64,000 nt of DNA, from sequence record MW057919.1. One strand, written 5' to 3'. The position numbers and the translations under genes are program-made. Under the pieces are notes generated by a model, which was given only the letters and a program-made list of their open reading frames with translations, did no database searches and was not told the DNA's origin. Each line of letters begins with the position of its first letter. Position 1 is the stretch's first letter. Shown here piece after piece: positions 2,078-12,751 of the stretch.

Positions 2078-10841
<8,764 letters not shown>

Positions 10842-10899
10842 ATACTTGGAATAGTTATTTATTGTAACCATTCTTAAACCAATGTAATAGGTAATTAAC

Positions 10900-11205
10900 A
10901 TGTCTCTACTTAAAAAGATCGGTCTAGCTCTAATTGGATCAGAAGGACGTAAGGAAGTTTTTGAACAAGAGTTAACTAAACTATCAAATACTAATGCAGT
11001 TATTGATCAAATGGTGATTAATGTACTGGGTAGTAAGAAGAAGTTAAATGACTTCCTAATTGAAGCTGAAGAAATTGATAATAAGAAACTAGGCTTCATT
11101 AAAAATCGAGCCGAACTTATTAAACTAGTCAAATCTAAATATTCACAAGACCCTCGGGTTGCCGATGTTGTAGTGTCACTTTACATTGGTGGTTTCATTT
11201 ATTGA
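10900..11205 (+). CDS. Hypothetical protein, 101 aa
   Basis: ORF with AGG RBS. Confidence 0.7.
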   Translation: MSLLKKIGLALIGSEGRKEVFEQELTKLSNTNAVIDQMVINVLGSKKKLNDFLIEAEEIDNKKLGFIKNRAELIKLVKSKYSQDPRVADVVVSLYIGGFIY

Positions 11206-11212
11206 GGTAAGT

Positions 11213-11905
11213 ATGTCTAAACCTAATCTTGAGTGGTTAGCTTCCTTAGAAAGTAAAGAAGCTAAAAGTACAGTAGATGCTTCTGATATGGATAATGACC
11301 AAAAGGAAGGTAGTGATAAATCACAACATGACGAAGCTTCTGAAACTGAGAAGAATATAACTGCAACTGATATACAAATTGCAATTGAAGAATATGCGCG
11401 TATCCGTGCATTAACCACTACTAAAGATCTTCCAGCTGACCCTGAACCAGGCGATACTTATCATGTAAATGGGGTAGATTGGATTTATCAAGAAGATGGT
11501 GGATGGGTAACTATGCAAGGTATTTATGGCCATGAACATTTTGATGAAAATGGTCTAAATATTGAAGCAAGTGGCATTGACCAGAAATCAGGTGCAACTA
11601 AACGTTATGTGGTAACTGGTTATAATGCTCAGACTAACCCAGCTGCTATGCCTGGTGATAACCTGACTGAATGCGTTATCCTAATGCAGAATGGACTTGT
11701 TCCAGAAGTTGGTGTAAATGGCCTAACTGCTGACTGTCTAATTAAAATCGTTAAAGATTTATTTGAAGGTTACCAAGCAGGCCCATTTGCATGTGAAGAG
11801 AATCAGGTAGTGATTAATTCAATGGACCGTGCTCTTAGTGCAATTCATCAACGCTTCGTACGACGTAAAGAACAGGGTACTGAAGGTACTTATAGTGGTA
11901 ATTAA
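11213..11905 (+). CDS. tad1: Tad1-family anti-defence nucleotide-signal sponge with N-terminal acidic extension, 230 aa
   Basis: C-terminal QNG..EVGVNG..LIKIVKD..GYQAGPFACEEN..ALSAIHQR..RRKEQGTEGT matches the Tad1 pattern FQxG..G...L.IV.DRL..FQAGPF..EN...EAL...R..R..V.GT. GAGG RBS favours ATG 11213 over TTG 11186. Confidence 0.75.
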   Translation: MSKPNLEWLASLESKEAKSTVDASDMDNDQKEGSDKSQHDEASETEKNITATDIQIAIEEYARIRALTTTKDLPADPEPGDTYHVNGVDWIYQEDGGWVTMQGIYGHEHFDENGLNIEASGIDQKSGATKRYVVTGYNAQTNPAAMPGDNLTECVILMQNGLVPEVGVNGLTADCLIKIVKDLFEGYQAGPFACEENQVVINSMDRALSAIHQRFVRRKEQGTEGTYSGN

Positions 11906-11911
11906 CATATT

Positions 11912-11967
11912 GCCTCCCTTCGGGGAGGCTTTATATCGTAATGAAAAAAATTTGAGATTTATATTAC
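11912..11967 (+). promoter_or_regulatory. Terminator + early promoter cassette
   Basis: GCCTCCC-ttcg-GGGAGGC (11912-11929), then AAAAAAATTTGAGATT-TATATTAC (core 11960-11967). Confidence 0.8.
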
Positions 11968-12012
11968 TAATACGCAATTAGGAAAATAACTATCTAGTAA
12001 AGAGGAATCATA

Positions 12013-12507
12013 ATGAACGTTGTAATCTTCACTGCCCGACCTATTGGTTATAAAGTTCCTGGTCCTAACTCCGCTGTAAATAAGTTTGAACTACATACAG
12101 CTAATGCACCTAGTGTATATAGTTCTTCACCAGGATTACCAATTACCACTCAAGAAAGTAGTTGTATCTATACACTCACTTCGAATCATGAGCTAGTCGC
12201 TGGCATCACCGATAATGATAACTCCCTCATGGTTTTTAGACTAGTACTTGCGTATAATAATGATACAGCTAACTATCTAATTAGTACCCAGGTTATTGAT
12301 AGTAGCGCTGAACTAAAAGGAGTGGAAATCATTAGTGAACTCAGTTTCAGTGTAATTGATACTGGTGCTCATGCGATTCGTCGAGTGAATTCGATCGGTG
12401 TATGTGAGGCTGTTGCCGCTCGATGGTCGCCAGTTGCAATTGTAGCTGATACTAGTGGTGAAGACTTTGGCGATGTATGTACCTCATATATCAAATCGAG
12501 TAACTAG
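12013..12507 (+). CDS. Hypothetical early protein, 164 aa
   Basis: GAGG RBS; first gene after early promoter. Confidence 0.75.
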   Translation: MNVVIFTARPIGYKVPGPNSAVNKFELHTANAPSVYSSSPGLPITTQESSCIYTLTSNHELVAGITDNDNSLMVFRLVLAYNNDTANYLISTQVIDSSAELKGVEIISELSFSVIDTGAHAIRRVNSIGVCEAVAARWSPVAIVADTSGEDFGDVCTSYIKSSN

Positions 12508-12508
12508 C

Positions 12509-12751
12509 ATGGTAGATAAAGACAAAACAATGGTAGATTTGGTTAAGTCAGCACATGAGCTGATTTCACATCTTGACACACTAAATAAAGTAGCAGCTAC
12601 CATTAATCTAATTGGTATGCCAGATGCTTTAAAAGAAGTAGTTAAACTCCCCGATGTAAAATGTGTTGTATATAAACGACCATTAACTGACAATCTAATT
12701 AAGATTGTCTTTAATGATGGTAGTTGCTTTGTAATGAAAGATGTAAATTAA
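12509..12751 (+). CDS. Hypothetical protein, about 80 aa
   Basis: ATG directly after upstream stop (track ORF starts at GTG 12455). Confidence 0.6.
   Translation: MVDKDKTMVDLVKSAHELISHLDTLNKVAATINLIGMPDALKEVVKLPDVKCVVYKRPLTDNLIKIVFNDGSCFVMKDVN

Follow-up and report, generated by a model that had tools for sequence, protein, structure and literature searches.

A Tad1 signal sponge behind a predicted propeptide and capsid anchor in a phiKZ-like Pseudomonas jumbo phage

The product of the gene at the end of a run of tail genes in a phiKZ-like jumbo phage is very probably a precursor in three parts, by which a Tad1 sponge is carried into the phage head and from there, along with the DNA, into the next host. 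The gene lies in a 64,000-nucleotide stretch of sequence record MW057919.1 (the window), which represents DNA of a phiKZ-like Pseudomonas aeruginosa jumbo phage. The predicted parts of its product are an acidic disordered propeptide, a small beta-strand module that would serve as a capsid anchor, and a C-terminal Tad1 domain (Table 1). The family, the capsid location, the processing, the injection and the role of the N-terminal extension are all already known from published work on the phiKZ orthologue gp184; with these in print, the gene adds no new biology. The analysis does point to modest refinements concerning the junction between anchor and sponge and the ligands that the sponge may bind.

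The ATG start of the open reading frame is preceded by a GAGG Shine-Dalgarno sequence. At 100% identity, vB_PaeM_kmuB and one further phage share the surrounding 2.1 kb, for which 47 records of Phikzvirus give matches of 90% or more; the 230-aa protein itself is also 100% identical in vB_PaeM_kmuB. The sister-phage gene phiKZ gp184 (PHIKZ184) likewise codes for 230 aa, has the same neighbours and shares 96.1% identity at the protein level, and chain I of PDB entry 8y6v, named gp184, is 96% identical. Nine substitutions separate the two proteins, seven within the N-terminal extension (positions 23, 39, 43, 45, 48, 54 and 75) and the remaining two within the Tad1 domain (177 and 215), none of them at a pocket residue. 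The properties published for gp184, namely inner-capsid anchoring, processing, injection, Tad1 function and dispensability, should transfer to it. Scans of the whole 230-aa protein with Pfam, NCBIfam and PADLOC returned nothing useful, its PHROGs matches are to families of unknown function only, and a word-based search with the C-terminal domain alone yielded six candidates and no gain.

Table 1. Positions in the window of the gene, the predicted parts of its product and the neighbouring features.
Feature	Position	Strand	Basis
Terminator preceding the gp182 homologue	8799-8826		Hairpin and RNA end at 8831
gp182 homologue (664 aa, baseplate spacer) and gp183 homologue (101 aa)	8847..11205	+	Open reading frames, annotation of identical phage
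Gene, 230 aa plus stop	11213..11905	+	Open reading frame list and translation; phiKZ gp184 orthologue
Acidic, predicted disordered propeptide, residues 1-63	11213..11401	+	pLDDT <50, composition
Predicted small beta-strand module (capsid anchor), residues 64-108	11402..11536	+	Model, 8y6v_I superposition, PMC11297242
Gly106-His107-Glu108, predicted head-protease site at the anchor/Tad1 junction	11528..11536	+	Motif in 20/20 homologues
Tad1 sponge domain (predicted fold), residues 109-230, beta-sheet then two-helix hairpin	11537..11902	+	Model, Foldseek, VIA, alignment
Intrinsic terminator, 7-bp GC-rich stem-loop (11912-11929) then T run	11912..11936	+	Hairpin and RNA end
AT-rich TATATTAC motif, candidate phiKZ early promoter	11960..11967	+	Pattern match, ahead of next gene 12013-12507

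Judged by sequence, profile and predicted fold, residues 109–230 are a genuine Tad1 domain, and the match to Tad1 that an earlier note on this DNA had proposed for the C-terminal ~120 aa is borne out by all three. First, a phmmer search of PDB sequences recovers only gp184 and Tad1 chains, the latter at E values of 1.5e-6 to 1.3e-5 over query residues 117–226. Second, a family profile of 20 homologues matches the Tad1 PDB chains at E values of 9e-13 to 1e-10 and spans positions 6–123 of the 125-aa CbTad1 chain. Third, an AlphaFold model of residues 109–230, built on a 37-sequence alignment, reaches a pLDDT of 94.4 and a pTM of 0.82 and consists of four strands and two long helices; this domain model from the deeper alignment supersedes a full-length model of low confidence (pLDDT 57.6), for which the Foldseek list was already headed by Tad1 structures. 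The Foldseek comparison with Tad1 that the same note had suggested as a check returns Tad1 structures for all of the top 20 matches of the domain model (E 2.6e-8, TM 0.75–0.77, ~122 columns), with the next, unrelated match at E 0.05. Alignment with VIA-align gives Z scores of 10.3–11.3 to Tad1 (rmsd 2.4–3.7 Å over 106–116 residues) and of 6.6 to the best non-Tad1 chain; in the same comparison, T4 Vs.4/Acb2 aligns structurally to the helical hairpin of the domain model with Z 6.5. Precomputed annotation assigns PF24729 (Acb2_Tad1_hairpin) to the 230-aa protein and to 15 of 19 homologues, although the PF24729 match is absent from the local Pfam scan of the protein, and a PF24729 search of the nearest related virus record finds no match anywhere, with the same outcome in control genomes, and so carries no information. 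Matches from tblastn extend to 88 Bacillus phages, one of them with an annotated anti-Thoeris protein.

The ligand sites of the domain were read from ungapped phmmer alignments against the mutational and structural data of the Tad1 preprint PMC10680739. According to that preprint, the pocket for gcADPR and cyclic dinucleotides in CbTad1 is formed by F82, N92, R109 and R113, and the cyclic-trinucleotide site by R90 and T97 in CbTad1 and by R88 and T95 in CmTad1. The four pocket residues align without gaps to Y187, N197, R214 and R218; all 20 homologues keep N197, R214 and R218, and have F or Y at position 187. From these residues it appears that the gcADPR and dinucleotide function has been kept. 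At the trinucleotide site, CbTad1 R90 corresponds to E195 and T97 to N202 in the alignment. Of the 20 homologues, 19 have E or D at position 195, as do most of a wider set of 37 Gram-negative phage Tad1 proteins. The hexamer-interface residues M102, W103 and K106 of CmTad1 are likewise not conserved, their counterparts being S209, A210 and Q213. Given E195 and N202, canonical binding of cA3-type signals is unlikely in this branch; canonical trinucleotide binding seems to have been lost, and perhaps the hexamer too. The trinucleotide site is in any case an added function of some Tad1 proteins and not a feature that defines the family.

Two substitutions listed in the earlier note as possible changes of ligand specificity are confirmed by the alignments: the Phe of FQxG is replaced by M158, and DRL reads DLF. 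Judged from aligned residues, Glu195 and Asn202 look most likely to change specificity, rather than M158 or DLF. The prediction that this branch has lost its canonical trinucleotide site is a small new point and a testable refinement of the published picture. In that picture, gcADPR binding and relief of Thoeris immunity are credited to phiKZ gp184 by bioRxiv 10.1101/2025.11.23.690004 and by PMC13282480, both citing Li et al. 2024 (Nature 635:719); the 2023 preprint of Li et al. makes no mention of phiKZ.

The N-terminal extension measures 108 aa, close to the 110 aa first estimated, and its acidic character is plain from residues 1–63, which hold 16 D+E vs 7 K+R and are predicted to be disordered in the full-length model (pLDDT <50). 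A conserved Leu-x-Trp...Leu-Glu element occupies residues 6–13 of this segment. The strands of the following module (64–67, 82–85, 88–92 and 98–100) all fall inside residues 64–102 of the full-length AlphaFold model, and the proline/aromatic motif previously likened to motifs of virion proteins is found at residues 72–98, its single occurrence in the window. Only 34 residues of gp184 are modelled in 8y6v_I, and these superpose on the AlphaFold model with TM 0.77 and rmsd 1.6 Å. The segment shares 97% identity with the model, equivalent to one mismatch, and position 75 is the sole difference from phiKZ gp184 between residues 55 and 176. Thus, the part resolved in 8y6v_I must lie within residues 55–108, outside the Tad1 domain. 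The propeptide and the protease motifs are read from the sequence, and the anchor from its match to the capsid structure; cleavage and ejection come from the literature on the 96%-identical gp184.

Thomas et al. 2012 are said to have described the head-protease motif as S/A/G-x-E, with Gly allowed at the first position. Protease-type motifs of this form end at E13, E16, E44, E59 and E108 of the protein. Apart from the folded Tad1 domain, the motif is regularly found at two positions of the alignment, one near the N-terminus (E13, in 17 of the 20 homologues) and one at the junction between anchor and Tad1 (in all 20). The phiKZ head protease is reported to cut after Glu in S/A-x-E (PMC9026906). 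Glu108 would be the most likely place for a cut on the evidence of the alignment, with Gly at the first position as in the S/A/G-x-E form of the motif. Cleavage after E108 would free a protein of 122 aa, the size of a canonical Tad1. The stand-alone anchors of Psa21-type phages stop at the residue aligned to H107; that this end coincides with a domain junction and a protease motif is a new point, if a modest one.

The gene belongs to a gp182-gp183-gp184 transcription unit with a terminator on either side, and each of the two terminators falls at an RNA 3' end. RNA runs were read as assembled contigs from a tailed library and were used to locate RNA 3' ends. Nanopore RNA data from a close relative place such ends at 8831 and 11934, where the contigs run on into poly(A) loose ends. 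A homologue of phiKZ gp181 (tail fibre/lytic transglycosylase) lies further upstream. The placement of the gene given by the earlier note, last in the run after the tail genes and before a terminator and early promoter, agrees with the gp181–gp183 homologues upstream, the stem-loop at 11912–11929 and the candidate promoter motif at 11960. This AT-rich motif, TATATTAC, is one that we take to be the phiKZ early-promoter consensus. In published work, phiKZ early promoters are ~10-nt AT-rich motifs (PMC7598289), and the gp182 protein is a baseplate spacer (PMC13250141). RNA contigs of the close relative break at 11934–11976. Late expression of the gene is suggested by its context and by packaging into the prohead; a TATG late-promoter motif was considered and set aside, four bases being too short for a promoter assignment.

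Several further observations concern this neighbourhood. The gp183 homologue (10900–11205), situated between the baseplate spacer and Tad1 genes, has as its only match a PHROG family to which no function is assigned, and the genes at the same position are longer in PhiPA3, 201phi2-1 and Psa21. A 23-nt stretch around the early-promoter-like motif has no repeat within the window. In three Illumina RNA runs of the close relative, contigs containing a 33-nt stretch (window positions 11938–11970), which includes the motif, enter differing flanks on both sides, and the stretch may accordingly recur elsewhere in the genome of the relative. At window positions 12442–12456, 13 bases are replaced by 73 different letters in the RNA contigs of the relative; this strain indel sits at the end of gene 12013–12507, where that gene overlaps the start of 12455–12751.

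The slot that follows the gp181, gp182 and gp183 homologues is conserved and is occupied by proteins of three architectures. The phiKZ type consists of propeptide, beta anchor and Tad1. In the second, Psa21 gp249 (L002:2857-3132) and its RVTF4 counterpart (L005:2857-3135) are proteins of 91–92 aa in the syntenic slot with propeptide and anchor only; Psa21 gp249 aligns to residues 64–107 and ends where the Tad1 domain starts in phiKZ. In the third, 201phi2-1 gp280 and PhiPA3 gp217 are likewise preceded by gp181, gp182 and gp183 homologues, have a Tad1 domain that is 53–58% identical, and conserve a related N-terminal element and the protease motif at the junction, but lack the beta anchor and have an acidic spacer of ~70–90 residues instead. 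The record of 201phi2-1 gp280 notes its detection by mass spectrometry. Among IMG/VR sequences, extended Tad1 forms occur only on contigs of ~310–325 kb, and stand-alone Tad1 proteins of 105–146 aa occur on contigs of all sizes.

The stand-alone anchor thus ends where the domain boundary and the conserved protease motif also lie, a pattern that fits fusion or loss at a processing site. A tentative extension of this idea, possible but somewhat short of probable, is that the slot is a modular head-loading cassette in which a targeting element and protease sites are shared among the three architectures, that Tad1 was grafted on or lost at a protease site, and that the jumbo-phage branch of Tad1, without the canonical trinucleotide site, is specific for gcADPR and dinucleotides. 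Modularity of anchor and cargo would be a small testable refinement, and it could help in designing a tag from the N-terminal 108 residues with which to load other proteins into jumbo-phage heads.

A different Tad1 arrangement is also present in IMG/VR, where fusion proteins of 325–366 aa begin with a cyclophilin-type peptidyl-prolyl isomerase (PF00160, E 4.7e-45) and end in a Tad1-like domain (L018:3329-4333, L019:3329-4333, L020:3362-4339, L014:3227-4327 and L015:396-1496). The contigs L019 and L020 are jumbo-sized at ~310 kb; the others that carry the fusion are shorter pieces. A search of the available papers found none on an isomerase-Tad1 fusion.

Taken with the published record on gp184, these features suggest how the precursor may work. 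It would be made together with the baseplate genes gp182 and gp183, and the acidic propeptide with its conserved N-terminal element would probably target it to the assembling prohead, by analogy with the capsid-targeting sequences of T4. The beta module would hold the protein on the capsid's inner face, a step shown by cryo-EM in phiKZ, where gp184 is described as a mostly beta-stranded minor capsid protein of the inner capsid surface (Yang et al. 2024, PMC11297242; PDB 8Y6V) that belongs to the vertex-binding complex and lies near the vertices (PMC11297242). The prohead protease (gp175 in phiKZ) would then cut after Glu in S/A(/G)-x-E and remove the propeptide; by the same account gp175 cleaves gp184, most of which is not resolved in the capsid structure (PMC11297242). 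A further cut, most likely at Gly-His-Glu108, would free the 122-aa Tad1 inside the head, the release being published and the exact position predicted here. In the description of Chan et al. 2025 (bioRxiv 10.1101/2025.11.23.690004), which names gp184 Tad1 and reports that its gene is dispensable, the N-terminus is wedged in the capsid and the head protease frees the C-terminus, which is then injected when the next cell is infected. The Tad1 domain would accordingly be ejected into the cell upon infection, as reported for phiKZ by western blot; gp184 was validated in this way as an injected protein and was also scored as an inner-body interactor (Fossati et al. 2023, PMC10449902). Finally, the injected Tad1 would sequester Thoeris gcADPR and CBASS cyclic dinucleotides in the Y187/N197/R214/R218 pocket before effectors are activated. 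Ligand binding at this step is published for the Tad1 family and cited for phiKZ, the pocket residues being assigned from the present alignment, and specificity is likely narrower than in some relatives, with cA3-type signals probably not bound canonically (E195, N202).

A 2026 review (PMC13282480) also states that phiKZ injects Tad1 and thereby blocks CBASS and Thoeris. The idea of a virion-loaded sponge, which had been reached from the letters of the DNA, is therefore correct by the published capsid location, processing and injection of gp184, and is already known. The earlier note also mentioned a reported phiKZ Tad1 homolog, and gp184 is named Tad1 in bioRxiv 10.1101/2025.11.23.690004 and PMC13282480. 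The accompanying remark that the role of the extension might not be known is out of date, the anchoring of gp184 to the capsid and its processing having been published.

The dose that a virion could deliver bears on whether packaging does the main work. One gp184 anchor is present per vertex-binding complex, with five complexes per vertex (PMC11297242), which implies roughly 55–60 copies per virion, or ~0.1 micromolar in the cell. At this copy number the injected protein may only delay signalling, unless further copies ride with the inner body. An unlikely alternative is that new synthesis of the precursor or the domain in the cytoplasm does the main work, the packaging being incidental and the injected copies too few. 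The small dose suggested by ~55–60 anchors per capsid would agree with this, as would the Bacillus phages, whose Tad1 genes stand alone among replication genes, encode ~125 aa and carry no packaging signal. However, injection is shown experimentally (PMC10449902), the gene sits among structural genes and not behind an early promoter, and the protease motifs of the propeptide (17/20) and the junction (20/20) are conserved among homologues, which speaks for selection on processing and packaging. Both modes of action could operate side by side.

That the protein is instead a capsid cement protein, with a Tad1-like domain that is structural or binds the inner body and has no sponge activity, is highly improbable: retention of the anchor alone at the slot in Psa21-type phages, the scoring of gp184 as an inner-body interactor (PMC10449902) and the departures from CbTad1 and CmTad1 at the trinucleotide-site and hexamer-interface residues would fit it, but the four gcADPR/dinucleotide pocket residues are invariant or conservatively kept in 20 homologues, the gene is dispensable for growth (bioRxiv 10.1101/2025.11.23.690004), and anti-Thoeris/CBASS activity is cited for phiKZ Tad1 (bioRxiv 10.1101/2025.11.23.690004, PMC13282480).

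The preferred reading, a sponge loaded into the head as part of a precursor, sets this protein apart from canonical Tad1 proteins in architecture and gene position. CbTad1 from a Clostridium botulinum prophage (PDB 7UAV/7UAW), CmTad1 (8KBB) and the Tad1 of Bacillus phage SBSphiJ7 match the predicted fold of the present protein throughout its 122-aa domain. Unlike the present protein, with its 108-aa N-terminal propeptide and capsid anchor, they have no extension, and canonical Tad1 genes are found among replication or early genes, whereas the present gene is found among structural genes. By arriving with the genome, a sponge can dampen Thoeris and CBASS signalling ahead of any phage gene expression. 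To our knowledge, few cases of pre-packaged anti-defence proteins have been described, T4 IPI* being the classic one. As in the route proposed here, the anti-defence cargo of T4 is reported to enter the prohead by means of an N-terminal propeptide, to be cut by a protease after Glu and to be ejected with the DNA before phage expression (PMC9026906). Like phiKZ gp184, IPI* is dispensable on ordinary hosts (PMC9026906). Its fold and target are unrelated, in that IPI* binds and inhibits a type IV restriction enzyme directly. The T4 targeting sequence, in addition, comprises 10–19 residues and leaves nothing in the shell, whereas the beta module of the gp184 type stays bound to the capsid.
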